Shown here piece after piece: positions 6,225 through 57,292 of a stretch of DNA of 64,000 bases. Each line of letters opens with the position of its first letter. Position 1 is the stretch's first letter. The notes beneath the pieces are model-generated. The model saw only the letters and a list, made by a program, of their open reading frames with translations. It had not been told where the DNA came from and searched no databases. The DNA comes from Mytilus edulis (taxonomy: Eukaryota): positions 26,846,001-26,910,000 of the forward strand of contig NC_092350.1 of assembly GCF_963676685.1 (NCBI RefSeq), in the 5' to 3' direction. A program made the position numbers and the translations under genes.

Positions 6225-8801
6225 TTATTTAAGTGCTGTAACAAGTTGCCGCCAAAATACTACATCCCCTTGCTCGTCGTTTGGGAATTCTATGTACGAT
6301 TGGGATTGGACGACTTCTAAAATATGCAAAGGAAAATCACGAGCAGATATTTGCTCAAAAACCACAAGGAACAGTACATTTTCGTTATTGCGTTCGTAAA
6401 TACTCTCCATTCTCGCCATATTAAACTCAAACATACACCAGTACGACTTCAGGTAATGGTAAGTCATAATGACAACAGTTTTATGACTATTGTGAATAGC
6501 GGAAGTAATGTTAGTCGCGATGTCATTTCCTGGTAAAAAGTTTCTCTTATGTAAGCATAGGCGAATGCCATTTTCTTTTTCCAGTGTTTGAAGTAATTGT
6601 GTATGAACAAACGATCGATCGTCATCTGCATAAGACACAAAGACGTCATACATATATTCATTTTCATCTTCGTCAATTTGTGGTATCTTACTTCGAGATC
6701 TAATTTTCACCATGTAGTAACAGTATCTCAGCTTCCATCGAAATCGGTAACAAACACCCATGATAAGAACAATTATAAACAATGAAAGCGAAACAAGTAG
6801 TCCGGAAGTGAGAATCACATAGGATGTACATTCCTTTTCCAATGTTGTGAATAGTTCTGGAATATGTTTCATCTGAACACGTTTTCCAGTTGATAATTGA
6901 CAAAAGTAATGAGTTTTATTAACAATGTGTACACTTGTACTTCCCATCCAATCTATAAATTTTTGAGATTCACATGTACAAATCAGTTTGTTCCTCGACA
7001 GATTGATAGTAAGGTTTTTTCTCTTGTCAACTAAGGAATTAATCTGGATAATCGCTTGATTATTGATAAATGTTATTAAGTTATTTCTTAAATTTAAGTA
7101 TGACAGTTTTATCAAATGTGATAATTGAAAGTCAATATTTTCGATAAAATTGTCACTTAGATCTAAAAATTCCATTTTTATTTGAGATTTAAAAATCTGG
7201 TGAGGTAAATTGGATATTCTGTTTTGAGATAAATCAAGTTTTATTACATTTAACAAGTGTTGGAATGTGTTTCCATCGATATCAGATGGTAAGATAAGTC
7301 CCAGTAAATTATTACTCATTGACAACTTCTCTAATACAATGAAATCTGGACCGAAGAAGAACGTCGAAAGATAGGAGCACATATTCGAAGAAAGATCTAA
7401 GTATCTCAATTTCTTTACATTTCTCAATGGGCCAATCCAACGTGTCAAAAGGTTGTTGCTCAAATCAACACTTTCTAGTTTATTATTAGATAGCTCTACT
7501 TCCGTTATGTTATATTGGGAGCCACAAGAACGGTAATTCAATTTTGTAAGGTTGTAGGGTATGGGTATTAACGTTCTTCCAAAACCACCTTGTTCAGTTG
7601 TTCCACCTCGAAACCACACATGTTTAAATTGAGGATCCAAATATTCGTCAAGTCTAACATCAGTGTGCCAAGTACACACAAGGTCTAAGTTGCACTTTTC
7701 TGGGTTACTATCTTCCTTGTGGAATGAATTCATGCCGGATACATCTACAGTTTTTACTGATAAAGCCAACAAGTCATTCACGTATGGTCCTAAGGAAAAC
7801 ATGTTGTCTCTTACTGATAGATGGATCAATGTTGTGGGAAGAAATCTCAAAGCACCAGGTTCTATTTGTTGTAGACGGTTGCTGTCCATATGAAGCTCTA
7901 GGATGGATGTGTTTTTCAAATGCTTTATATGGTTAGTATGCAAATATGTATTCATATCAAAGACTTTATGGATTTTGTTGACTTTCAAAATTTTGATTGC
8001 GGAAAACTGAAGGTCGGCTGTTACATTTTCCAACACCTGAAATTTCAAGCATGTATTTCCTGATAAATCGAGAGAGGCAATATTTTTCATTACATGAAAA
8101 GTCTTTATCTGTAAGGATTTTATTTTGCACATAGATAAATTTAAATGTCGAACGTATGGTACATTCTGAAATGTGTTGGGTGTCAAAACTGGTACTGAAC
8201 AATGTCCTGTAAACCCAGAAAAATCCAGAAGCTTCAGGCGTTTGAGTTTTTTAAACTGTTTACTCAGTATTGCTGTTTTGTTATGCACAAAATCCATTTT
8301 CAAAGTTTCCAATCGCACTAAAGATGATATATCAGGCTGATATTCATCATAAAAGTTTTCCTTCAAATTCAAATAAACTAAGCTTTTAAAACGAGCCAAC
8401 CATTGGTGCGTAAAACTAATCTTTCTCAAATTGTTATGTTGAAGGTCGAGTTCTTTTAACTTTTCTAATCCGATGAAAGAAGATGATGAAATTGAGTTAA
8501 TGTTATTGAATGAAAGATCCAACGATGTTAGAAGTGTGTTTTCCGAAAATATTCCATCTTTAATCACCTCCAAGCTATTCATTCGTAAAGATAGTTTTAA
8601 AAGTACGTTTGGAAACCTTTGTATTCGTGTCATATTTAGTCTTGAACAATCTGCAACGTAAAGCGATGAACTCTGGTCTCTTTTACATGCGCATCTATGA
8701 TCGAACTCACACGGTTTAAATCTATTTTTTCGTTTAATTATTGAGGCAGACCTGTAAAGTATTTCGAATGTTAGAACCAATACATATAACGGTCGTATCA
8801 T
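6225..8801 (-). CDS. Toll-like receptor (single cysteine cluster type), intronless CDS, 858 aa
   Basis: One long ORF. N-terminal hydrophobic leader; LRRNT (CEFDHRCAC...VADCSRL); many LxxLxLxxN LRRs; one juxtamembrane LRRCT (NKLICTCESQKFIDWM...YFC); TM helix (VILTSGLLVSLSLFIIVLIMGVCY); TIR domain with box1 YDVFVSYA, BB loop CLHKRNFLPG, YLKSYWCMFE and box3 FW. Confidence 0.96.
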   Translation of the reverse strand: MIRPLYVLVLTFEILYRSASIIKRKNRFKPCEFDHRCACKRDQSSSLYVADCSRLNMTRIQRFPNVLLKLSLRMNSLEVIKDGIFSENTLLTSLDLSFNNINSISSSSFIGLEKLKELDLQHNNLRKISFTHQWLARFKSLVYLNLKENFYDEYQPDISSLVRLETLKMDFVHNKTAILSKQFKKLKRLKLLDFSGFTGHCSVPVLTPNTFQNVPYVRHLNLSMCKIKSLQIKTFHVMKNIASLDLSGNTCLKFQVLENVTADLQFSAIKILKVNKIHKVFDMNTYLHTNHIKHLKNTSILELHMDSNRLQQIEPGALRFLPTTLIHLSVRDNMFSLGPYVNDLLALSVKTVDVSGMNSFHKEDSNPEKCNLDLVCTWHTDVRLDEYLDPQFKHVWFRGGTTEQGGFGRTLIPIPYNLTKLNYRSCGSQYNITEVELSNNKLESVDLSNNLLTRWIGPLRNVKKLRYLDLSSNMCSYLSTFFFGPDFIVLEKLSMSNNLLGLILPSDIDGNTFQHLLNVIKLDLSQNRISNLPHQIFKSQIKMEFLDLSDNFIENIDFQLSHLIKLSYLNLRNNLITFINNQAIIQINSLVDKRKNLTINLSRNKLICTCESQKFIDWMGSTSVHIVNKTHYFCQLSTGKRVQMKHIPELFTTLEKECTSYVILTSGLLVSLSLFIIVLIMGVCYRFRWKLRYCYYMVKIRSRSKIPQIDEDENEYMYDVFVSYADDDRSFVHTQLLQTLEKENGIRLCLHKRNFLPGNDIATNITSAIHNSHKTVVIMTYHYLKSYWCMFEFNMARMESIYERNNENVLFLVVFEQISARDFPLHILEVVQSQSYIEFPNDEQGDVVFWRQLVTALK

Positions 8802-28752: not shown

Positions 28753-31700
28753 TTATGTATGTTTTGTAGTGTTTTGGTCAAGTTTCTCGACCAATTTTAT
28801 ACTTCTATTATTTTTGGCAATATCGAGAGCTGTCAGTCCCGATTCATTTTTAAGATTTACATCAGCGTTGTTTTCCAACATTAAATTCACTAAGTCTTCT
28901 CTATTTTTATCACATGATATATGAAGGGGTGTAACTTTATCGAAAGTACTTTTATTAACATCAGCGCCATATTGTAGCAGCAATTCTGCAACATTTTTAT
29001 GGCCATTGAAACAGGAAACATACAGGGGTGTTAAACCACCAACCATGGAAAGGTTAATATCTGCATTATGATCTAGGAGAATTTTCACAACCTCTTCATT
29101 GCCATTATAACTTGAAATATAAAGAGGCGTCGATGACTTTTCAGTTGCAAGATTAACATCAGGGCGATATTTGAACAACAGTTCAATTACTTCAAGATTA
29201 CCATCTTGACATGCCATATACAGAGGGGTCATGCCAACATTGTTTTGGGTATTGATATCAGCTCCGTATCTTAATAAGTATTCGGCTAAATCATAGTATC
29301 CATTATCGCATGCGACATTAAGAGGTGTCAACCCTGCAACTGACCGATGATTAATATCTGCATCTTTTTCTAGGAGGTATTGAACGGTGGCTATGTCATT
29401 TTGTTTACATGCAGCGTATAGTGGAGTAAAGCCTTCTTTAGTTTCAATATCCACATCAGCATCATTTTTAACACTGTTGATCATGATATCTAACACATCC
29501 ATGTGTCCACAAGTACTAGCCAGGTACAGTGGTGTAATGCCCGTGTCATCGCTTTCTGTCAAGTTTGCTTTATACTCTAAGAGCAAGTCTACTATGTCCT
29601 TGTGGTTGTTCTGGCATGCAATATGTAAAGGAGTATATCCTTTATTTGTTTTTATATTGACATCAGCATTGCGTTTAAGTAGAAATTCGACTGCATCTTT
29701 ATGATTGTGTTCACATGCTACATACAATGGTGTGGCTCCAATATCATCGGTAACGTTTATTTCGGCTTTATATCTCAACAATAATTCAGCAACTCTGCGA
29801 TGACCTTGATGTGCTGCAATATATAAGGGAGTAAAACCACCTTGCCGCTTTTGGTTTACATCAGCATGGTTATTCAATAGAAGCTTCACAACTAGATCAT
29901 GTCCTTCCATAGAGGATATAAATAATGGCGAACTTCCTTTAGTACGACAAAGGTTCACATCAGCGTCATTATTTAGAAGTAAGGATACGACTCCTTCGTG
30001 ACCATTCTCAGAAGCAACATACAACGGTGTGCATCCATTGGGTAAACATTGGTTGATATTAGCATGGTAACATAGCAGTAGTTCTACAATTGGGGTATGT
30101 CCATTATTGCATACTATATGAAGAGGAGTGTCCCCTTTTTCAACTACATGATTAACAAAAGCAAAATGTTCGAGAAGCATGTGTACGACATGTGTATGAC
30201 CATTACGACACGCAATATAAAGCGGTGATAAACCACCTTTTTTTGTCTGATTGACATCTGCTTTGTTTTTCAGTAATAACGCTGCAATAGCTGTATGTCC
30301 ATTTTCACATGCGATATAAAGCGGAGTATAACCGAAGTCTGCAGCTAAATTTACTTCTGCATTGTTCTTAAGAAGTAACTGAACATCTTCTAAGTATCCT
30401 TTATGACAAGCCATGTACAGGGCAGTTACACCACTCTTCGTTATTTTATTAATGTCGGCATTATTGTTAAGCAAATGTGAAACGACAGCTAAGTGGCCAT
30501 TATATGATGATATGTGTAATGGCGTAACTCCGTCCTCATTTTCCTGATTTACTTCGATTCCGTGTCTCAGTAGCCAGTCTACAACGTTTATATGTCCGCT
30601 TTCACAGGCACTATACAACTGCCCAAAACCGGTTGTACTATGGACAGAAGTATTAGATTGCTCATTGTGCAGTACATCGATAACATCTGTATGTTTATTC
30701 ATGCTTGCAGCATAAAAAGGTGTGTAACCTTCATCTGTAGCCTGGTTTATATTAGCATACTTCGTTAATAGAAATTTGACTAGCAATGTATGACCTCGTT
30801 CAGACGCAATATAAATAGGCGTAACCCCACCGCTCATTGTTTGATTAACATTGGCAAAGTTGACCAATAAAATGTCTGTAATATGCTTGTTTCCGTTGTA
30901 GCATGCAACGTGTAGGGGCGTGACTCCTTTGTCAGTAGTTTTGTTAGTATCTGCTTTCTTGTTCATTAACATTTCAACTAGATCTGAATTTTGATGAAAA
31001 CAAGAGACATGCAATGGAGTTGCACCAGCACGTGTAGGCTGATCAACATTTGCGCCTTTCTCCAATAAAATCCGTGCTATTTCCTTGTTCTGTTTCTTGC
31101 ATGCGATAAACAATGGAGTGATTCCTTCCTTTTGAGGTTGATTAACGTCTCCATAATGTTCTATTAAATTCTCTACAATATCAAGATGACTTTGTTTACA
31201 TGCGGCATATATTGGCGTCTCTTCAGTAATTGTTTCTTGGTTGACGTCTGTGTGATTCTTCAACAGTAGTTTTACAATATCTTGATGTCCAGAGTAGCTT
31301 GCAGCCCACAGAGACGTTTTTCCATTGCTTGAGATGCCACTGGACAAATTTCTACCTTGCGTTGTAACGAAAAATTCTACAATGTCATAGTAACCTAACT
31401 TGGAGGCCACATATACTGAATCAATGTTATGTGTATGTATGTCCATCATTTTAGAGGTTTTTGATAAATATGATATAAAATGCTTCCTAAAAGATTCATT
31501 TGTCATCTGAAGACAGGAGAACACATCCCAAGATTTTCCTTCCTTCAAATCCTTAATCATCCGTTCCACAAAGCTTTTGTCATGATTGAAGTCTATCGTT
31601 ATGCCTACTCTTTCACAAAGGGGAACAGCAAACGTGCATAAAACTACTCTACTATAAACGACATCAGAATCACCGTATTTGAGAATGCAGTCGGTATGTT

Positions 31701-34700
31701 TTTCGCCAAAGTACCGACAAAGAACTTCAAACATTTTGATATGAGAAACCGTGTACTCTTTCTTCGATTCTTGAATAAATAAACCTTTAAGGTTTTTTAT
31801 ACCATGTATAATATAACTTGAGAAAGACGGCATGGTCGTAGATGTTGTTTTAAAGCACATCTGAAATATGCTTTGCATCTTTGCTTTGTTTTCGGTATTG
31901 GTAATGTACTCTCTTTTTATTTTATTGTTCAGTAGAATTAAGAGAAGCATGAAAAAGTAGCAGTACTCATCATTCTTGTATAGCGCATTCATATATTTTA
32001 CTATATTTTCATACGGACTTCTAATAAAATCTATTTCCATAGATGTATCTCTTTTTTGATGAAAGAGTCTACATATAAGAGGGAAATAATCTACCGGAAG
32101 AGCTTTGCCGAACATTTTGTCTAACTCCATACGCTGATTATATGAATTCCAAATCAGCTGAAATTCATTCAGGCTAAGCGACAACTCATCACTTGACATG
32201 TTACATTCAATTGCTCCTAAGTTTAATAAAATATTTCTAGCATTCTTGTTCCCATACACGTTTGAGTGTATAGTGATGACAAATTTTGAATCCGGACAAT
32301 CTCTTAATTCTGATATGATTGCATCTCCAGAGTCTTCCCAAAGTTCTAGCATAGAAAGATTCATATTACAAATACCAAAAATATCCTCAATAATATAAAA
32401 GTTCTTTCGTTCGTTTTGTTTGATATTCAAAATATCTTTTGGGTTTGTTACAGGTATAAGTTCAAAGCCATTTCGAAGGAATGACAAAGCATTGTGCTGA
32501 AGTGTGAATGACTTTCCTATCCCAGAATTCCCCACCAAAACAACAACCTTGTGATCTTGTATTGTTTGTGATATGGATTTGGTTGCTTTAGTTTCTACAA
32601 ATCTTGCATCTAGCGTTTTCCACTCTAATATTATATCTACAATGATATAGATTATAATTTTACTGAAGACATAGAACTATACATATGGAAAAAGATTTGT
32701 ACTTTAAATATGATTTAGAAAGCAGGTCCTAAGATGGGTTATTTGTTCAAAATGGTTTTTTTTTCGTCAAAGAGGTGTCTACATTAAAAAAGATATTACA
32801 GGGTATATCCTCAATAGTCCATTTACCGATTTGGTTCTGTTATTACACACTTTTTAAACAAATTACTTCCCTTTGTCAATCGTAGATTGGTTCCATACCG
32901 GACAAAAATGGTTTTTGCCAATGCAAAACATGATGAATTGAAAGTGATGTATCGGCGCTTTAACTAATTTTTCATGAAAAATAATTTCTGATGTCAAACG
33001 TATTTCGCTGAACAACAAATTAATGTAATTAAAAGATTTGAAAACCTTCAAGATTACTCACATTACACGCAGGAAAATTTGCTCTTTCTGCTAGCTCTCC
33101 ATTTAAAAAAAATTTATGTCCCTCATAAGGGAGACAGCTACGAGAAGGGATCTCTAATTACAGGGTCAATTACGGGAATTTGCAAATAGCCTATTAATCT
33201 TGAAAGTAAAAGTTGACAAATGAATTTTATAGCTTATTGATGCAGTGAATTGCATTGTTTTACGTTTTAGCATAACGGGGCCCTTTGTATCTTATTATAC
33301 GGTACTGGTTTTTGCTCATTGTCATAGACCGTACCTTCTTCCGTTATTATTCACAGCTTTGTCCTTTAGTCCCGTTGTGTAGTTGTCTTCTTGGAAAATG
33401 AAACCTCCCTCGGCCCCTTTATTATTTTCAAAGAAAAACAGGGGATGGTCAGAATCACAGAAGTGATCACAGAAACAATCGCGAACAAAAACTGTAGCTT
33501 ATATTGAAAACTAAAACCTGTAACCTGGTAAGAAAAATGTACGAACTCCCATATAACTCAAAAGTGGTCTCAATTTGTAGCTAAATACTGGTTTGAATAC
33601 GGTACAGGTATTTTTTAAGTATTATGCGTACATAATCAATTATAAATGAATTAGTAGATAATACCATGCATTTTGTTAGACAGCGAATCATCTCCACGGC
33701 TAACTTCATCCATTAAGTTCCTAATGTCTTCAATGATATATTCAAAATCTTTTCGCTTTAAAGTTTCGACTTTGCCACATATTACCATTAACTTTTCCAT
33801 TGTTTGATGAGGAATCTCAGGGTTGCTCATTATAGTTTTCCTCACGTCAATCAATTTAACCAGTAAACTAACGTAAACGGAATCTAAATCTGCTTTTTTG
33901 AAGACGTCACATTCATCTTTCGAAACTTTACCAGCAATATACTCAATAGCCTAAAAAATATATTGTAAGGTGAATATCTTTGCTTGTGTGGTTCATATAT
34001 GTTTTTTTATAATAAGGATTAGGCCGTTGATTTTCATGTTTGAATTGTTTTACACTAGTCATCTTGCAATGGGGTCCTTTAAAGCTTGCTGTTCGGTGTG
34101 AGCCATATATTCAATGGTGCTTGAAACTTTAATCGAATTCAATCTCATTTTTTAAAATTACAATTACAAGGACCAGAGGCGGATTTAGATGGGTCCCCTT
34201 ATCTGGGAAAAATTGGTTGATTATTTAAGGGAATCCCTGAAGCATGACCAGAGAGGGCCGCCTCTTAGGCAGTCAGTGGGCCTCATTTATAAAATTTTCA
34301 AGATCCGCCACTGAGGACGACCAAGAAAAACTCTAATGACAGGTGTTTTTGTGTTGTTTTTTTTTTTTGTTGTTTTGTATTTTTATATGTCCAGTCGCAC
34401 GTGCTGTAGTAAATTTTAGATGTACATGTACGTGTGTCGTGAAAATGATAAAAATCATACCACACTAATTACCTTTGTTATAGTTCCCCAGTGTCTTTCG
34501 AATTCATCTAATCTCATGGAAGTTTTGGCTTTACTGTTGATGTAATTATAGTAGTAGAAAATAGTAGACACACTTTTCTCAACAGAAGTATCTGGGTCTG
34601 GAGGCAACACGTTCTGGACTTTGATATATGTCAAATGCTGGATGAGAAGAAACTGGAGACTCAAGTCAAACGACGAGGATTTCACTTGAGAATTTCCTAA

Positions 34701-36112
34701 AACAAAAGAAGGATATGTTACATAAATGGAGATACGTTTACAATGTTTTCATCGTGCAGACGCAGAAAGAGCATACATTTGCTTTACTTACTTTCTGTGT
34801 AGCGTAGCAGACGCGACTATATTGGTGTTCTGGAACTAATTCATCGTGTTCAGCTTTAACCAAAATTTTAATTTCATTTGATAACTTCAAAAAACAATCG
34901 TTTGATTTGATCATGAACATTGATAAAACAAATAATTCGTATAATTTATAAACCATCGTATCAGGTTGAGTCCCCGTAATAAATCCGTTCAAAGGCAGAA
35001 CATTCTATTATATAAGGTTATATTTTGCATGAATATATTCATTATATACCAACTGAGGACCAGCTCCGGTTGCGTGATTTTCTCGCTGCGTTGAAGACCC
35101 ATTGGTGGCCTTCGGCTGTTGTATACTCTCCTGTCAGGTTGTTGTCTCATTCTCAACTTTATCATTGTATTCAATAATATTGTATAATAAAAATAAGAAG
35201 ATTTTGAATTTGCCAATGAGACCGCTATCCAAATCTACAACTGTAATAGTTTATCAAAGACCGATGCTACATCCTACTCAATTACCTGAAGGAGGAAACA
35301 TTACTTCTTCCCAGTGAAAGTTGAATATGACGTTCTTTTTAGTCAGATGTTGTAACACATGTTTGTATTGGTTAAGTCTGCTACACAACTGATCTGGCGG
35401 GAACTTCTTATCAAACAAAACTCTCATAGCCCTTGGAGCTAACCTTAACATGAGGTTTGTAAACTTAAGATAATACAGTTCCTCATCTGTTATAGTTGAC
35501 AATTCGAACCTTGAAAGAAAACGAAGGATAAAACATTTCAACATTAACCTTAACATCAAATATTGTATTTGTTTATATCTTGTTATAACAAAGCTGTTTA
35601 AAGCATTATCTATACTGTCTAGCGTTTTAGAATAACATAATATGATAACATTGCCACCTTTTATCTTTATGACTTTGTATTCTATTGTTATTCAATATAT
35701 TTTTTATATGATTATTTTGGATAAAATTTCAATAGCGTTCAAACTACAAAGTGATACTAGTATTATACAAAATGAATTTTGCGGGGTGACACAGTTAATT
35801 ATCATATACAATGATGATGTATACCTCCCATGGTAAAAACTGGCAAAGAAAAAAGGCAACTGACAGTACAACACTCCAAATTAAAAAAAACAACAGATCA
35901 TATATTGTCGTAGACAAATTCTGTTTAGAGGATCGCAACCTATGTTGTCCCCTAGAAGTCTAAAGTTTTTTTTGTCGTTGGTCAGCTGTCTCATCGACGG
36001 ATAACCAACATCTTTTATTCACAATCATTGTCTCTCTGTTGGTGTCCATGTTCATTAACTTACGGTGAATTTCCAATCACGTCTGGAGGAATTACGGGAA
36101 CATTTTCAATTT
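28753..36112 (-). CDS. HEPN(DZIP3-like) - helical linker - nSTAND3 P-loop NTPase - ~26-27 ankyrin repeat protein (NLR/STAND-like); 5' end unresolved
   Basis: Exons (minus strand): 36064-36112 (tentative), 35286-35509, 34473-34696, 33665-33950, 28753-32636; GT-AG and in phase. Exons 35286-35509 and 34473-34696 read like a DZIP3-type HEPN domain (EELYYLKFTNLMLRLAPRAMRVLFDKKFPP...SSSFDLSLQFLLIQHL...LPPDPDTS...FERHWGTITKAI). The last exon has EWKTLDARFVETKAT, Walker A GNSGIGKS, Walker B FYIIED, then 33-aa TPLxxAC ankyrin repeats to the stop. No in-frame ATG upstream of the HEPN was identified. Confidence 0.85.
34174..34313. mobile_element. Short MITE with 5-bp TSD
   Basis: TIRs CAGAGGCGGATTT / AGATCCGCCACTG, with AGGAC on both flanks (34169-34173, 34314-34318). 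A related fragment lies at ~63110-63210. Confidence 0.65.
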
Positions 36113-38427
36113 CTGTAATTGCATCTATATGATTTGTCCTGGTACCCATATTAATTTTCTGTCGAGTTATCAGAAATTAACCATCCTGTAATGGTATACA
36201 TCATTTATATTCAACATGCAAACACATTCACTATCAATTCATTGTTATGCTAATTGTTTCGAATATACATGTACACGTAGTAACGAAAGACTGTCATGGC
36301 CAAGAACGCATTTGTCAAAAATAAAAGTTTCTCATTGGGAAAGGGAGTATATTGTATGAAAGTTGTTTCGTAAGTTTCCTTATTCTTGACAAATATATTA
36401 CACTATGTTATTTTAAAACTAAACGACATATATTTTCGATAACAAAGGATCCTACTGTCGATTTCGATAGGGGTGAGGCGCATGATAAGACATTGGGGCG
36501 TTCTCCACCTCCCCTTTGATTGGCACCCCCTCTTATTTCAATTTACTTCATTTTTTTTCTGGTATTACTCCTCTTTCCAAAAATCATCGATCCGCCCCCA
36601 TGATTTCTAGATAAAAACAGACACCATTTTTAAATGTGAAGTTAAATAGTAATGGAACTCTGGTTCCTTTTCAGCCCTTTTAAGAAGATCTTCAATGTGA
36701 ATAGAGGAACAAGTTGGTGAGTAAAAGAACACGCACATTGGATGACAGGGATATGGAAATCAATCCTAGTTCTGTATTGTAGCTTTTTAACGCTTGTGTA
36801 TACTCGTATGTTTGTGTTCTATAACCGTTTTTAATTTTTTCAATTTCTTGTGTCGATTTAATGGAGTTGTACACACTCTTGTTTCAAAATCTTTATACTG
36901 CAGAATGCCTGTTTCTCCTTACAGACAGGACATTGCAGTAAAAGGTTTTTAAATATACAAATGTCGTCACTTTCATTTTATGTCGACTGCTTCCTTTTCG
37001 TTCAGAGGTCAGATGCCACTTCTTTTATTTTGTTCCTCTCAAAATCTATTACTAGTAATGAACTTTTTGAAATTTCCTTGTGAGAAGAAAATGAATAAGA
37101 TCTTACCAAATTTATACCGCTTTTCCTTTCTTTCAAGATTATATTAAAAAGCACTTACTTAAAAAGTCATACATCTGCGTCGAACATTAACAGTAAAACA
37201 TTTCCACGGTTGCTGACCAATAACAATGCAATGACCGTATTTGTTTGACAATTAAGAACAAAATCGACGATGTGCATAATTTTTTATTGTTTGTAATATT
37301 TTAAACGTCAGCGAATTATGTTTAAAAAATATCTTCACGACTGATTGATATAAAACAGTAATTGAAATTAATAAGAAATATCTAAAAATAAAATGTTAAT
37401 ACTAGATAAGTAATCAGTAGATACATAGTTTGTGATATCTTCGAACGTTGAGTGTTTATATTTTCAAGGAGAGAGCTATCTCATCTTTATACATTTGTAT
37501 GCTTAAAAGTTTAAAATTGCTCTTATTTGAATGAATAAGACAGTTCGACATCCTTTAATACCAATTGTTTTCGCTAGTAACAAACATAACATAAATACTA
37601 CAAACTATTTACAAAATATTCAGACTGACAATTTAAAAGGTGTTGATCCATCATGATATTTAAATTTTGAAAGAGATCTCCGGAGATTTTGAATTATATT
37701 TCTTGTAAAAAGTCTATGCATTTTGATATCATATTGAATGTTTCATAAGACCCCCCCCCCCCCCAAAAAAAAAAAAACCACCAACAGAAAGAAACACCAA
37801 CAAAAAAAAACACCTCCACCACCACCAACAACAACAAAAACAAACGAACAACAAAAAAACAAAAAACAAAAAAACTTACAAGAAACTAACAACAAAAAAA
37901 TAAACAAAAAAACAAAACAAACATTAACAAGTCATTTCTGCCATTGTGCAACATACGTTATTCCCTTTAAATGTATTTCATGGTTTAAACATCACATTCA
38001 ATTGACCTAAGCTAAGATAACATACCGTCTAGTTTCTTTAATTTTAAATACCACTATAAATACAAAATATTGGGGATTCTATTTAGATAGAGATAAAATA
38101 CCGAAGTAATCCAAGTAGAACGAACTAGTTATTTATAAATAAGGTAGAACGCATTCAAGTTAGCTACTAAAGCATTTTAATATTATCCCGCTTTTTATAA
38201 CCGTTTGAACCAATTAATGACAGTTGGAAGCCCTGATCAGACACTTGATAATTCGCCAATTAGTGAATATGTTCATCTCAACGACAAGGAGAGAGAGTCA
38301 GAGAGAAATAAAGTGTTTTTTCTTGTTTTTATTTTTATTTTATCAACAAATTGTTTGAAAAACCAAGGTTATTCCCCTTTGGACGGTAACATAATATATG
38401 TATAATGGTGTAATCTTGTGTGCAGCA

Positions 38428-48219: not shown

Positions 48220-51200
48220 CTACCGATTTGCTTTGTTACTACGTTTTTTTGGACTTTTCCAATATTGAGCTTCTTCGGCCTTTTTCCGTCTTGGTTTTAA
48301 ACAAAATCCACACACACTGGTTGCAGACTTTTCAACGCCACTGTAATACTTAAACAATGATAACTGTTCATGATTTGTTAGTATTCCTGTGCTTACTATT
48401 TCATCAGAAAATGTTTGGAGAGGAATTGAAGGAATTCTAACTTGGAATAACAATGGTCCAAGTTCCTGTCTTTTTTCTTCTCCACTTGTGTTTTTGTCTT
48501 TTAATTGACATTGAGCTGTAGCCCATTTATTTAAAGTTTTGAAGAGGGTAAGTTCATCAATTAAAATAGAATCAGCTTTCTGAAGAAAAATTGTCAATTC
48601 TTCTGCAGTTAGTGACATAAAATTCTTGTTTTTAACTACTTCTTCAAATTTAGTAGCAATTATAGACAAAGTTGTGTTGTACACATACTCTAAGTGAATT
48701 TGTTTCGAGTACCTAAAAACTTCAATGTAGTTAAATGGACGCTGAAGACAGTCTTGTATTTCACGTTTACATTGGTCTGCTAATTGTGCAACCCCATATT
48801 TTTCGGCACACTGAAAAATGTCCATTCGAGAAACCAACGACTCTTCTTTCCATTGTATGTTGTCAAGATATATAAACCTGCCAAAAATAATTAATTTGAA
48901 TATGTAAAATATAGAATTCAAAAATCTAACTTAATGACTCAATTTTGAGATTAACATAACAATGTGAGTGGTAAAACAAAAGCATTTGAATACAGTTTAA
49001 TCATATATATACTAGCAAATACCCCCAACACATGTACAATCAAACGACAAAAGTATTTGCTCTTACTAGTTAACGCTGAGTGGACAGCGAAGAGGAAGCA
49101 CAACATCAATCAGCTTTGACCGAAACAGCGATGGCATTACTTAGCTTAAACTTTTATGTCACAAATAGCGTAGCGAAGCAAGACGATAACCCCACTTTTT
49201 AGCTCACCTGGCTCGAAGGGTCAAGTGAGCTTTTCTCATCACTTTGCGTCCGTCGTTCGTCGTCGTCGTCGTCGTCGTCGTCCGGCGTCGTCTGTTAACT
49301 TTTACAAATATATTTTTCTCTGAAACTACAAGGCCAAATTTTACCAACTTAGCCACAATCATCATTGGAGTATCTTGTTTAAAAAATGTGTCCGGTAACC
49401 CGGCCAACCAACCAAGATGGCCGCCATGGCTAAAAATAAAACATAGGGGTAAAATGTAGATTTTGGTTTATAACTCTGAAACCAAAGCATTTAGAGCAAA
49501 TCTGAAAAGGGGTTAAATTGTTTATCTAGTAATATTTATCTGCTCTGAAATTTTCAGATGAATTGGACAATAGGTTGTTGGGTTGCTGCCCCACAATTAT
49601 TAAATTTAAAGAAATTTTGCTGTTTTTGGTTATCTTGAATATTAGTATAGACAGAGATAAACTGTCAGCAATAATGTTCAGCAAAGTAAGATCTACAAAT
49701 AAGTCAACATGACCTAAATGGTCAGTTGACACCCTCAAAGAGTTATTGCCCTTTATAGTCAATTTTTAACAATTTTCGTTAATTTTATAAATTTTTGTAA
49801 ATTTTTACAAAATATTTTTCTCTGTGTAACTAAAGGGCCAAGTTTATTATAGATGGAGAAAATTGTAAGTAGCAAGAATGTTCAGTAAAGTAAGATCTAC
49901 AAACACATCACCATCATCAAAACACAAAATTCATGAATCCATCTGTGTCCTTTGTTTAATACATGTATGCACATAGACCAAGGTGAGCGACACAGGCTCT
50001 GAAGAGCTTCTAGTTCGTATTACGGATCGTGAATTGAACAAAGGACATCAAGCATACTGGTATGCGTGATACCGTGAGATGACTGTGTTGTTCATTCTCT
50101 CATCAATAGCGAAACCGACGCTAACAAAATATACTACACTTGTTAAAATTTTTAAACGTTTAAATCCATAGCCTCTCCAAATCGATTTGTAAAGATTAAT
50201 TTGTGTGTTTTGGATTAAATCATGTGTGTTAAAAAAAAAAGCCATTTGGATCAACGACTATAAAATATATTTGCAATAAACAGTTCAATAAATAATAGAT
50301 CTAATAGAAATATAACAAAAAGTAGAAAGAGAATAAATATTTTAAAGTTAACTAAAAGTTTCACAAACCAATTAAGCAATTTTCAAAATTTTCCTCACCA
50401 CCTATTATTACACTAATAAACAAACAAATCGACAGACATGCACATATGGGTGGTTTAATTTTTTTTATCTTTTCATCCCGATTAACAGATTTTTTCAATA
50501 CATATATTATAACCTTTTAAAACAATTAAAATAGTCTTCAAATAGATCCTTTGTTTACAACTTTCGCCTTTGATCATACATCATGCTAACTGTACAAGTT
50601 GCAAGACGGTTAACAATTCAATATTTATAGATTCATGAGAAAATTAATGTTCCAGAATGAATTAATTTGAGGTAGTGGTAGGATTTCAATTGAGAAACCC
50701 CATCCACCAACAACCAAAAGACAAGGATTGACAAATTGTTCCTTTTTTGAAATTTATTGAAACTGTAATATGACTGGAATATTTGGAGGGAAAATTATAC
50801 AGAAATGATTATCCATATGTATAAGACTATAACATCCTCTCAAACATCTAAGACATATTAACATACCCCTAGTTTTTGGTGGGGTTCGTGTTGCTTAGTC
50901 TTTAGTTTTCTATGTTGTGTCTTGTGTAACATTATTTGTCTGTTTGTGTTTTTCTTTTTTAGTCATGGCGTTGTCAGTTTATTTTTGTTCTATGAGTTTG
51001 ACTGTCTCTTTTGTATCTTTCGTCCCTACTCGAGAAGATGCCCGCAAAATCGCGGTTCAGTTTTGAAACAAAGAGTTTTTAAATTTCTCGGGCTCACGTC
51101 AATACCAAATTCGAGTCTTGACCCCGATTGGTCCATTAAACTTAGAAAATGTTAGTGCGAGTGGGGCATCCGTGTACTATGGACACATTCTTGTTTAGAT

Positions 51201-51632: not shown

Positions 51633-54162
51633 ATGGATAGATTCGGTATATGTTCTGATAGGCCCATAGATACTATGAGCACTCGGCTTTCTAGAATTTG
51701 GGCAACTGACGAATTTGCAGATATACAGTTTACATTTGGACGAGGAGTCGACGGAAGGAGCTTACCTGGACATAAAATACTATTGTCCATTAGGAGCAAT
51801 GTATTCAAAGCTATGTTTTATGGACCGATGGCAGAAAAAGTTGATGCAGTTGATATAACAGACATAGAATATGATTGTTTTAGGACAATGCTGCGGTAAG
51901 AACATGTTTACATTTTATCATCTATCGAAGCATCGATGTGCCTCTCTGATCAGACCTGTTTAGTTACGGGTTAAAATTCCTAATAACCAAGATTCACTAT
52001 TCTTATTGATATAATAGTACTAACGTTACTGTTTATATAATATAAACTCATTACAGATACCAGGACTAAATTTAGTATATACGCCAGACGCGCGTTTCGT
52101 CTACAAAAGACTCATCAGTGACGCTCGAATCCAAAAAAGTTAAAAATGCCAAATAAAGTACGAAGTTGAAGAGCATTGAGAACCAAAATTCCTAAAAGTT
52201 TTGCCAAATACAGCTAAGTTAATGATATGGTTGTTTGCACAAGAATAAGTAAAAACAAACCACACAATTCCAAGAAGGACAGAATCCACATGACTTTAAG
52301 GGAAAAGGCGAAAAGACAAACATCAGCCCTAAAAACAACGCAGACTATTAATTTTAGATATTGACCACACCAAATTCGTTAAAACAGGTTTGAACTCAGA
52401 CGCCACTGATCATATTGAAGAATCGGCTGTTATATTTTCATATACTAGTTATTCACTGATTATTAAGAACATTATGTATTTAAACTATAATACAAAAAAG
52501 TGGACAATGATATCAAGGGGACTTTCAAATCTCAAAAGTCTAGAGAACCTGACAATACCATGGCAAAACATGAAAGACGACGAAAAGACAAACAATTTCG
52601 TAAACTCTTCAAAACCTGGAATGGAGTGTTATCTCAGGTGATCCGGCGACTGTCTTGTTTTTCATGGTAATAACAAATGTGGTTAAGTGTGTCATTCTTT
52701 GATATCACAATTAAGGAAAAGAGGACAGTCGTGTATGTGGTCACGACAGTTTGAACACATCCGTGGTAATTTGTGATATATATTTCTTCTACTCTGAAAC
52801 TGCATAGCCAAATTCAACCAAACTTGGCAACAATCATCATTAAGGTGTCTAGTTAAAAAAAGATGTGCTCGGTGACCCCGAATGCAAATCAACTTGACCA
52901 CCACTGCTAAACTAAAAGATACCGCATAGTAAGAACCCTTAGATCTACAGACTATCCATATAAACCTATTGATAATTTGAATTTCTTCTGTTAGAAATAG
53001 AATCAAATTGATTGAGAATGCTTTTCTATATATGTTTTTTAGGGATGTGTATACAGATGATATTATTATAACTGAAGAAAACTCTATTGATCTTCTAAAA
53101 GCTGCACACAAATACGAATTTGAGGGTCTCCTAAGCAAATGTCAAAACTATCTATATCGAGAGACAAATATTGACAACTCTTGTTCAATATATAGTTGGG
53201 GAAGACATTTGGGGCTATCCAGCTTGACAGAAAAAGCTCTCGATTTCATAGTAGACAGCGCTGACGATGTTTTAAAAACAGAAGGTTTTCTCAAACTGAG
53301 TAACGATGATTTGCACACGCTTCTTTCAAGAGAGGACATCTGTGCTTTTGAGGAGGAAATAATAACTGCTGCAATAAAATGGGCAAGGAATAAATGCAAG
53401 CAGGACATGATAGAAACAAATGGACAAACAATGAGACAAGCGTTGGGTCCAGTGATTTACACTTTACGCATACCGTTATTATCTCTTAAAAGATATTCCG
53501 ATATTGTTGTCAAGTCCATGATATTGAGTGAGGAAGAGGAATTAAGTTTATACAAGTATTTCACTATGTCTAAAAAGCGTCTTGCAGATCTTTGTGGATT
53601 TGATAAAAGTTCGAGGAACCGGCTTTCGCTTTTCGTTAAAGCAGAGGACATTCACAAAAAGAGGAAAGTGGAAAACATAGATGACACCATAAAGGCAACA
53701 CGGTTTCTACAGACGTCTAAGTCGACGATCTTTGGTGATACATACACGAACAAGTATCAAAAACAATACAATTATCAAAGAACCAACTACTCACAAAAGA
53801 TTTCATTCTTTTCACCGGAGTCATTTTTCATAAATGCAATTACAATTTCTTTCCCATTTTTGAGTGAAAAGAATAAACCTGTACCAGAAGAGATTCAAAT
53901 ATCCGGTTCTGTTCCAACGTGTAAAATTAGGATACCTGTTAACGAAACAAAACTGTTCGATATGAATAGATATGTTAAAGAGAATGAAGAAATTGAAATA
54001 AATTTCACGCCCTTCATCAAATTTGACAAGCAATTTAAGGAAAACGAATCAAGTGGTTGGAGAGAAGTTAAAATAGGATCAAACAAATCAGTGTTCGTTC
54101 AGGTTGAAGGGAGTTATTCTTTTGTTAGTGCAATAGATATATCTGCCTCGAAGATGAAATAA
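51633..54162 (+). CDS. BTB/POZ-BACK protein (BTBD1/2/3/6-like) with divergent C-terminal domain, 2 exons, 460 aa
   Basis: Exon 1 51633-51895 (ADIQFTF...LPGHKILLSIRSNVFKAMFYGPMAE...ITDIEYDCFRTMLR), phase-2 GT-AG intron, exon 2 53043-54162 (VYTDDI...LLKAAHKYEFEGL...EEEIITAAIKWARNKC...ALGPVIYTLRIP). Confidence 0.9.
52081..52124 (-). ncRNA. Minimal type I hammerhead ribozyme (intact), antisense within the intron of the + strand BTB gene
   Basis: Reverse complement GCGTCA-CTGATGA-GTCT(tttgt)AGAC-GAAA-CGCGCG-TC-TGGCGT, inside a dispersed repeat at ~52053-52222. Confidence 0.82.
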
Positions 54163-56056: not shown

Positions 56057-57292
56057 ATGCTTGTATTGTTGTGTTTATTATCATTGTGTTCCGATTCTTA
56101 TATGTATTCTGCAAAAGACATAAAGCAGCTTAAGTATGATATTTTTGAATCCAGACAATACGACTATTCAATTAGACCATCAAAAAACTTTTCTGAACCG
56201 ATAGAAATTTATATTAAATTTTGTGTTCTTGGAATAAATGACATTGATGAAGTTAATCAAAGATTTGTGACCTCTGGCAAACTAGACATCGAATGGAAAG
56301 ACGATTATTTAGATTGGAACATTACTGAATACAATAACATATCGTCTTTATCTGTACAACACTATTCGGTTTGGAGGCCTGATATCGCACTGAACAATGG
56401 TCATTCGTCCACTGGAAATTTACACCTGTCTGAATTTGATATTATTGTTTTCAATACGGGTCTTATCAAATGGACACCTTATAGTATTTTTGAGACACAA
56501 TGTGAAATAAATACTATGTATTTTCCGTTTGATAAACAATTTTGTGAAGTGGAATTTGTCTTGTGGACTGCATCTGCAATCGGATCACGTTTTCGAAAAG
56601 CTGAAGTTGAGGTGTCGACACTACATGTAAGGGGAGAATGGAAGTTTGTCAATGTTGATGCGAGTATTATCAACAACGGTTCGCTTCATAAGACCGTCTT
56701 TAAATTCAACTTACAAAGAAAACCAGGAAAAGTTATTCTAGAATTTGTTTTACCAGCAGTTATCATTTCTCTGATGGATTTAATGACATTTTGTATTCCA
56801 TGTGGAAGCGGAGAGAAAATATCGTTCACCACCACTATTTTCTTGGCATTAGCCGTATACTCAACCGTGCTTACGTCAATGCTTCCTGCAACCTCTTCTA
56901 ACTGCATTCTGGGAATATACCTTAAAGCACAGATGGTCATTGAAGCATGCATTGCGATTGTAGCGGCTTTACAGGTTCGACTATTTCATTGTAAAAACAA
57001 GGATAAGCTTCCAAAATGGATGTTAAGGTTTTGTCAGTGGTCTTTTAATCATAAAAGGAAACGTAAAATTCACGCTTGTGACAAACGAGTATCTATATTG
57101 AGTTTATCGGTATATGAAAACAGGAAAGATAATTCTGGTTGCAAAGAGGAAAACAATAACTCTACTCCACACAATATTAATTTTGAAGACGTTTGCCATC
57201 AAATTGACAGAGTTGCTGGTCTTGTTTTCTTTTGCGTTTCATGTATTACATTCATTGCTTATTGTGTTATGATAGGACTTGGAAATTGGTAG
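56057..57292 (+). CDS. Cys-loop ligand-gated ion channel subunit, divergent non-alpha nicotinic acetylcholine receptor-like, intronless CDS, 411 aa
   Basis: Signal peptide; YDYSIRP; WKDDYLDWN; WRPDIAL; Cys-loop CEINTMYFPFDKQFC (C-x13-C, 56501-56545); four TM helices with GEKISF before M2; no vicinal Cys-Cys in loop C. Confidence 0.93.
   Translation: MLVLLCLLSLCSDSYMYSAKDIKQLKYDIFESRQYDYSIRPSKNFSEPIEIYIKFCVLGINDIDEVNQRFVTSGKLDIEWKDDYLDWNITEYNNISSLSVQHYSVWRPDIALNNGHSSTGNLHLSEFDIIVFNTGLIKWTPYSIFETQCEINTMYFPFDKQFCEVEFVLWTASAIGSRFRKAEVEVSTLHVRGEWKFVNVDASIINNGSLHKTVFKFNLQRKPGKVILEFVLPAVIISLMDLMTFCIPCGSGEKISFTTTIFLALAVYSTVLTSMLPATSSNCILGIYLKAQMVIEACIAIVAALQVRLFHCKNKDKLPKWMLRFCQWSFNHKRKRKIHACDKRVSILSLSVYENRKDNSGCKEENNNSTPHNINFEDVCHQIDRVAGLVFFCVSCITFIAYCVMIGLGNW

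Follow-up and report, generated by a model that had tools for sequence, protein, structure and literature searches.

We analyzed a stretch of 64,000 nucleotides from the genome of the mussel Mytilus edulis (contig NC_092350.1, positions 26,846,001 to 26,910,000 of the forward strand), which we will refer to as the window. The minus strand of the window contains, from 28753 to about 37107, a gene that combines a HEPN domain, a STAND ATPase (signal transduction ATPase with numerous domains), and ankyrin repeats. This HEPN-STAND-ankyrin gene is intact, transcribed, and spliced in mussel. The predicted protein has 1567 amino acids, in the order short N-terminal tail, DZIP3-type HEPN domain, linker, nSTAND3-type STAND ATPase, and then 27 ankyrin repeats. 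Almost all of its paralogs keep two motif residues in the HEPN domain, and in this copy, both of them are lost. The gene is probably a single-copy and divergent member of a family that resembles the nucleotide-binding leucine-rich repeat receptors (NLRs), with a HEPN head that is dead and with an output other than RNA cleavage.

An earlier note on this DNA had proposed a more active role. In that proposal, binding of a ligand by the ankyrin repeats would drive oligomerization of the STAND module, and this would cluster the HEPN domains, which would act as RNases. As described below, the order of an effector-type head, a STAND switch, and repeats is borne out by the Pfam matches and by the joined exons, and the RNase output is not supported for this copy.

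Gene structure and transcripts

The gene has five coding exons (E1 to E5) and, upstream of them, an exon in the 5' untranslated region (5'UTR). The coding frame is 4704 nt, or 1567 codons and a stop, as read from the sequence and checked with a script. The script also confirmed that the coding exons all have AG acceptors, GT donors, and fitting phases. Among the predicted open reading frames (ORFs) at this gene, just one is long (28753..32538, with 1261 amino acids from an internal TTG), and it corresponds to the NTPase-ankyrin exon, as the earlier note had stated. Shorter ORFs overlap the upstream exons at 35278..35559, 34455..34685, and 33651..33854.

We compared positions 31800-37600 of the window with two sets of contigs assembled from public runs (X1 and X2) and with two runs of raw RNA-seq reads (X21 and X24). 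The joints 32636|33665, 33950|34473, and 34696|35286 are each present in one contig from X1 and in one contig from X2. The joint between E1 and E2 (35509|36064) is present in X2 alone. At all of these joints, the skipped part reads CT..AC on the plus strand, which is GT..AG on the strand of the gene. In X2, depth is limited to the exons and to three intronic repeats. X1 and X2 have two different organism labels. Thus E2, E3, and E4 are joined to the exon that begins at 32636 in RNA-derived contigs from both sets, as had been predicted.

The prediction of three in-phase upstream exons was correct for E2-E4 but incomplete, as there is a fourth coding exon (E1) and also a 5'UTR exon, and the coding sequence extends to 36149 instead of 36112. 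Similarly, the gene had been described as hidden by splicing. It is spliced, but it is merely an ordinary intron-containing gene, and its layout recurs upstream of 43 of 99 paralogous ATPase exons (see below).

E1 (36064..36185, minus strand) contains the ATG at 36149 and codes for 28 amino acids and 2 nt of the next codon. Its acceptor (AG at 36187-36186) is inferred. A stop codon (TAA, 36179-36177) lies in frame upstream, and this allele therefore has a well-defined start. Contigs from both X1 and X2 join 36177 to 37111 or 37106, with 7-8 differing letters in between, and there is a donor-like sequence (gtaaga) at 37106. Together, these point to a 5'UTR exon whose 3' end is near 37107. We call this exon E0 (37107..37231, minus strand; 37231 is just the edge of a depth bin, and the depth in that bin is low). 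Just upstream of E0, at 37738-38010, is a low-complexity stretch with runs of A and C, and the ORFs that it contains on either strand are rich in P and K.

In all four runs, depth is very high across three stretches within the introns (32770-33351, 33934-34321, and 34904-35291), with values that reach about 12900 in X1. The same stretches have many loose ends, and some joints go backwards (35112>35078). They are probably transcribed fragments of repeats or transposons and not exons of the HEPN-STAND-ankyrin gene.

The HEPN head

We searched for Pfam domains exon by exon. E3 (34473..34696, minus strand), which is joined on both sides in X1 and in X2, matches HEPN_DZIP3 (PF18738) at 37.4 bits (cut-off 27, E = 2.6e-9, positions 37-113 of 144 in the profile). 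A DZIP3-like HEPN domain is indeed encoded upstream of the ATPase, and E3 contains its core. By themselves, E1, E2, and E4 have no significant match in Pfam. However, the adjacent exons can be placed by using BLASTP against an oyster protein with the same domains (P0001, described below). E2 (35286..35509, minus strand) aligns to residues 253-316 of P0001 (E = 6e-10), which is the N-terminal part of its HEPN region, and E3 aligns to residues 319-388 (E = 4e-6), collinear with and directly after the match to E2. E4 (33665..33950, minus strand, joined on both sides) aligns to residues 394-445, again in collinear order, although this match is not significant (E = 0.54). E2 seems to encode the N-terminal part of the HEPN_DZIP3-type domain, and E4 is presumed to encode the last HEPN helix and the linker to the ATPase.

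To compare the R-N-x3-H motif across the family, we used the 22 closest paralog exons, another 20 high-scoring family exons, and P0001. (The closest paralogs were taken from 29 loci. An alignment was obtained for 23 of them, and we removed one, L038, as spurious.) The motif is retained in 20 of the 22 closest paralogs; the exceptions are L019, with Q instead of H, and L023, with W and G. It is also retained in P0001 and in all 20 of the other exons, which were hand-picked down the genome-wide ranking of matches to HEPN_DZIP3. Overall, 40 of 42 sampled paralog exons have the motif. In this copy, the site of the motif (34533..34550, minus strand) reads Y-N-Y-I-N-S, so R is replaced by Y and H is replaced by S. 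The Rx4-6H pattern of active HEPN domains is absent at the family position.

Other conserved positions in E3 have changed as well. Two conserved basic positions are altered: L-L-R-N-L of the family is L-I-Q-H-L in this copy, and S-T-I-F stands in place of [ST]-R-I-K. (At the latter segment, most of the closest paralogs have S-R-I-K or T-R-I-K, and most of the high-scoring exons, as well as P0001, have A-R-I-K.) Also, the 37 bits for E3 is about half of the score of the 150 family matches that we scored (68-112 bits).

Could this copy nevertheless be an active effector-switch-sensor receptor, in which oligomerization of the STAND module, driven by the ankyrin repeats, clusters the HEPN domains into an active RNase? 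It shares the exact architecture of the family, and Rx4-6H is kept by most members, both in our sample and in the pearl oyster, where 194 of 202 HEPN proteins have it (PMC9646362). E3 also contains an R-x6-H string, 11 residues downstream of the motif site, but it is out of the family register and such a string can arise by chance. Conceivably, this string could compensate for the lost motif. Against the active receptor, both motif residues are replaced, the two basic positions are changed, and the match to the profile is weak for this family, so we consider it quite improbable for this copy. With R changed to Y and H changed to S, a canonical RNase output that is activated by dimerization is unsupported, and we predict that the HEPN head of this copy cannot be a canonical RNase.

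The STAND ATPase module

E5 (28753..32636, minus strand) encodes 1293 amino acids and the stop codon, and it includes the STAND ATPase as well as the ankyrin repeats. It contains the long ORF and the Pfam matches to nSTAND3 and Ank. The NOD-like module, with a P-loop, a helical domain, and a winged-helix region, is at amino acids 1-400 of E5 (31435..32634, minus strand). The match to nSTAND3 (PF20720) has 67.8 bits (cut-off 27.2, E = 1.2e-18) and covers amino acids 12-134 (32233-32601). The nSTAND3 family in Pfam reportedly stems from surveys by the Aravind group. Walker A is G-N-S-G-I-G-K-S (amino acids 35-42; 32509..32532, minus strand) and Walker B is I-I-E-D (amino acids 81-84). Four residues that are invariant in our ATPase alignment (A2, with 39 relatives) are present here: G38, G40, K41, and D84.

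We used AlphaFold2 to model residues 1-420 of E5, with the 39 relatives in the alignment. The model has a mean predicted local distance difference test score (pLDDT) of 88.8 and a predicted template modeling score (pTM) of 0.80. The best match from the PDB, using Foldseek, was EfAvs5 (9jap_A, a SIR2-STAND protein; E = 1.5e-5). The next matches were NLRP3, NLRP14, NOD2, Apaf-1, CED-4, MalT, and plant NLRs, but also Orc/Cdc6 and clamp loaders. With VIA, the Z values are tied among the top matches (12.7 to 11.6, with 12.7 against 12.2 when STAND proteins and generic AAA+ proteins are compared), so the argument for a STAND fold rests on the length that can be aligned. VIA aligned NLRC4 over 295 residues, MalT over 313 residues, Dark over 272 residues, and NLRP3 over 310-315 residues, while proteasomal and p97-type AAA+ proteins aligned over about 174-195 residues. 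Beyond about 210 residues, which is past the P-loop domain and the lid, all of the matches were STAND proteins. Overall, the ATPase module is modeled as a STAND-type nucleotide-binding domain, followed by the helical and winged-helix folds. Between the nSTAND3 match, Walker A, the acidic Walker B, and the fold of the model, the earlier identification of a STAND NTPase stands.

By Foldseek's TM-score, the highest-ranking structure was human SAMD9 (9zjs_A; TM-score of 0.52, with a root-mean-square deviation of 7.9 over 476 columns). In the VIA ranking by Z, it fell outside of the top 50.

Sequence comparisons gave more limited results. When we compared the single ATPase sequence to solved chains, no match was better than E = 0.48. 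The A2 profile was uninformative for this purpose, as the search was swamped by ankyrin proteins via the C-terminal repeats of the relatives. The ATPase also had sub-threshold matches to ABC-transporter P-loop families from NCBIfam, which we rejected as generic similarity to Walker A. Among the models of bacterial defense systems in PADLOC, the ATPase part (31375-32634, minus strand) matched PDC-S73 (E = 3.8e-9, 33.9 bits, positions 172-293 of 752 in the profile) and, more weakly, mad8 (E = 0.001). The match to PDC-S73 would be a sequence-level link to an uncharacterized candidate for phage defense in bacteria. No Avs model from PADLOC matched the ATPase part at E ≤ 1. The description of this protein as Avs-like, which was also part of the earlier proposal, therefore holds at the level of the fold (EfAvs5 is the top match) and of the Pfam family, but not for the Avs models in PADLOC. 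Similarly, E5 has no match at E ≤ 1 to a NACHT, NB-ARC, or LRR family from Pfam, so the protein is NLR-like in its layout and is not an NLR by domain content.

The ankyrin array

The ankyrin repeats are at amino acids 404-1293 of E5 (28756..31425, minus strand). Pfam's Ank models identified 24 stretches. When we counted by register, and included the degenerate caps, there were 27 repeats in an unbroken register of 33 amino acids, with one unit of 36 amino acids, and with the consensus residues kept. This agrees with the original estimate of about 26-27 repeats. Pairs of repeats are 34% identical on average and at most 55% identical, which indicates an old array.

A large family in mussels

We examined the assembly of the M. 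edulis genome, which is 1.37 Gb in 2368 contigs, 14 of which are chromosome-sized. A first look with the ATPase part gave at least 504 candidates, and all 100 of the candidates that we scored had E < 1e-35. The best paralog is 29% identical to the ATPase part. For HEPN_DZIP3, there were at least 651 candidates, and all of the 150 that we scored were above the cut-off. Many of the HEPN_DZIP3 matches span positions ~37-115 of the profile, which corresponds to an exon equivalent to E3; in other words, the HEPN domain is split across exons in many of the paralogs, as it is in this gene.

To see if the two domains tend to be encoded together, we considered 99 paralogous ATPase exons and 186 places with HEPN. 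A HEPN_DZIP3 exon was found on the same strand and within 25 kb upstream for 43 of the 99 ATPase exons (27 of these were within 10 kb), and this is a lower bound. The HEPN exon was downstream in 8 cases and on the opposite strand in 1 case. This is an already-known type of gene, from a very large and lineage-specific NLR-like family with hundreds of predicted members in this genome.

A scan with HMMER of 1.84 billion representatives identified 817 relatives of the ATPase part, and none were over 30% identical. Among the top 45 relatives, all 45 have nSTAND3, 42 have Ank, 11 have HEPN_DZIP3, and 4 have CARD. We looked up 10 relatives, and 6 of them had names; these are all from Mytilus californianus or M. 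galloprovincialis. Another member of the cluster is from M. trossulus. The names are automatic, such as 'ankyrin-2-like', 'DZIP3-like HEPN domain-containing protein', or 'protein phosphatase 6 regulatory ankyrin repeat subunit B-like'. With nSTAND3 in all of the top relatives, and automatic labels for the ones with names, the family does seem to be a little-characterized one from invertebrates, as had been suggested. A word-indexed protein search with the ATPase part found just one distant protein, from an oyster (22% identity), and a protein search with E3 found no match.

Within the 64-kb window, the gene itself was the only member of the family, and there was no family neighbor or partner gene of the kind that is found in paired NLRs. 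This copy is a solitary gene and the most divergent member of its family.

Some of these results might instead suggest that the protein is not an immune receptor at all, but rather an ankyrin scaffold with a regulatory ATPase that has a role in ordinary cell biology. The names that NCBI gives to the paralogs, such as 'ankyrin-2-like', hint at this, but these automatic names derive from the ankyrin repeats alone. Also, the copy is single instead of being in a tandem array, and it is old (as judged by the identity of the best paralog and of the repeats), which is less typical of immune genes with fast turnover. On the other hand, nSTAND3 is the Pfam family to which a preprint assigns bacterial Avs5 (10.1101/2025.07.08.663546), the ATPase is similar to the phage-defense candidate PDC-S73, and the family has undergone a massive lineage-specific expansion, as described for conflict systems (PMC3710099, PMC8195603). 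We consider a role as a scaffold in ordinary cell biology to be very unlikely.

Comparison to known systems

Proteins with HEPN_DZIP3, nSTAND3, and ankyrin repeats from bivalves are known from automatic annotation only. Examples include LOC134228439 from the oyster Saccostrea cucullata (P0001), VDH98827.1 from M. galloprovincialis (P0035), and XP_063405131.1 from M. trossulus (P0153). P0001 has PF18738, PF20720, and Ank in the same order as the protein from M. edulis, and it is of similar length (1593 vs. 1567 amino acids). Nevertheless, the bivalve proteins are just 22-30% identical to this one across the ATPase, they keep the HEPN motif that is lost here, and the gene in the window is solitary instead of arrayed.

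Fusions of DZIP3-type HEPN domains to ankyrin repeats or to NACHT ATPases in animals have been described (Anantharaman et al. 2013, PMC3710099). That survey of DZIP3/hRUL138 HEPN domains names neither the nSTAND3 type of ATPase nor mussels, and this copy would belong to the remainder in which the motif is not conserved. In the pearl oyster Pinctada fucata, over 50 NACHT proteins have an N-terminal HEPN domain that is similar to DZIP3/hRUL138, and they were interpreted as being NLR-like sensors within the cell (Takeuchi et al. 2022, PMC9646362). Across bivalves, genes of this type have expanded, and their copy number varies (PMC9646362). The proteins from P. fucata share the order of HEPN head, STAND ATPase, and repeats with the protein from M. 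edulis, but they have NACHT along with LRR, TPR, or WD40, instead of nSTAND3 and ankyrin. And whereas 194 of 202 HEPN proteins from P. fucata keep the motif, this copy is like the few that lack Rx4-6H. The same HEPN domain has also been mentioned on NLR-type proteins in papers about corals and Aplysia.

As for the ATPase, nSTAND3 (PF20720) was assigned to Avs5 from Pseudomonas in a preprint (10.1101/2025.07.08.663546). In PMC8195603, nSTAND1 and nSTAND2 are the only nSTAND types that the main text mentions. When we searched the literature for 'nSTAND3', none of the matches listed were about animal receptors. Avs5 (AVAST type 5, with Sir2, STAND, and TPR) has a similar arrangement of an effector, nSTAND3, and helical repeats (10.1101/2025.07.08.663546), and a chain from the AVAST5 filament aligned to our ATPase model with Z of 11.7 over 174 residues. 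However, Avs5 has Sir2 and TPR where this protein has HEPN and ankyrin repeats, and the ATPase has no significant sequence match to solved chains.

There is a precedent of sorts for a HEPN domain without the motif. The Swt1-type HEPN domains lack Rx4-6H, and they were inferred to bind or sense rather than to cleave (Anantharaman et al. 2013). Swt1 belongs to a different HEPN family, has a PIN-HEPN architecture, and acts in nuclear RNA surveillance, so this is an analogy only.

Is the gene decaying?

Several results weigh against our view that this is an intact family member with some other output, and besides the R-x6-H string in E3, we gather them here. First, some residues in the ATPase that are conserved in the family have changed. 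An arginine after strand 4, which is present in 90% of the 39 relatives and which we take to be equivalent to sensor 1, is H123 in this copy (32266-32268). The first acid of Walker B is E83 instead of D (32383-32388, amino acids 83-84). In the winged-helix region, the family's I-H-D, which presumably corresponds to the MHD-type motif found in other STAND proteins, reads S-H-I, with D changed to I (31738-31743, amino acids 298-299). These changes could mean that the ATPase is under relaxed constraint rather than having a new role.

Second, the evidence for transcription has some limits. The junction between E1 and E2 is from a single contig with a depth of 3.2, and X1 also covers some unique sequence from the introns. 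X1 and X2 were classified as RNA by a tool's guess, and the spliced contigs are themselves an argument that they are RNA. In X21 and X24, the depth was zero on every exon, among about 6% and about 18% of the reads from these runs, respectively. This suggests that expression is low or restricted, and it means that transcription is shown by the spliced contigs only. Third, the protein collections that we searched (by word index, with HMMER, and with E3) did not contain an ortholog or an identical protein.

If these changes reflect relaxed constraint, then the gene might be an incipient pseudogene, one that has kept an open frame and its splicing but has lost its function. This would account for the loss of several family-conserved residues in both the HEPN domain and the ATPase, for the lack of exon reads in X21 and X24, and for the lack of an ortholog or identical protein in the collections searched. 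But the frame of 4704 nt is open across five exons, all of the splice sites are canonical, and there are spliced contigs in two runs with two organism labels. The 27 ankyrin repeats are all in register and have the consensus residues, and Walker A and the invariant Asp of Walker B are kept. Also, among the 17 exon differences that were listed for the contigs of X1 and X2, 10 were synonymous and 7 were non-synonymous, although these are a small and selected sample (the listed rows only) and another 149 rows lie outside of the count. Given the state of the gene, we think that decay is unlikely.

Proposed function

Our preferred explanation is that the gene encodes a divergent family member whose HEPN head is dead and whose output differs from that of its paralogs. 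As far as can be judged from the sequence, the STAND switch and the ankyrin sensor most likely still work. By analogy to NLRs and Avs proteins, the ankyrin array would bind a ligand, and this would release the ATPase module to oligomerize. If the HEPN head is not a canonical RNase, then this copy must have a different output. Most likely, the HEPN domain would pair with other proteins, perhaps including active paralogs, and the protein would act as a sensor, an adaptor, or a brake. Possibly the HEPN head regulates the active paralogs. Alternatively, the output might be pure scaffolding.

A more specific idea is that this 'dead-head' member is kept by selection. It would sense and switch, its HEPN domain would pair with active paralogs, and it would be a sensor or a brake within a hetero-oligomeric network. 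The changes in the ATPase from Arg to His and from I-H-D to S-H-I would then be adaptations of the switch, not decay. By analogy, this would be an animal counterpart to the pairs of sensor and helper NLRs in plants or to NAIP-NLRC4. We doubt that this fuller scenario is correct and would call it improbable.

HEPN-STAND-repeat proteins are among the largest candidate families of innate-immune genes in bivalves and corals, and in the literature that we searched, we did not find a bench test of any member. As one more entry in the catalog, this copy adds little. Its value is as a natural contrast, as it is intact and transcribed, with a switch and a sensor that look usable, and the catalytic residues of HEPN are gone. 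Comparing it to a paralog with an intact motif could show if the HEPN heads of this family really do cut RNA. The same comparison could show if the RNase-dead members are sensors or regulators, like the non-catalytic partners in other STAND systems.

Other genes in the window

About 20 kb from the HEPN-STAND-ankyrin gene is a predicted gene for a Toll-like receptor (6225-8801, minus strand). It is a single-exon ORF of 858 amino acids that matches LRR_8 (E = 1.6e-30) and TIR (E = 8.2e-18) and has a membrane span that was predicted from the sequence. Two ORFs with BACK domains, at 48220-48921 (minus strand) and 53008-54162 (plus strand), are probably exons of BTB/BACK-type genes; the second of these also has part of BTB. 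Finally, an ORF of 411 amino acids at 56057-57292 (plus strand) resembles a Cys-loop neurotransmitter-gated ion channel, with its ligand-binding and membrane domains both present.

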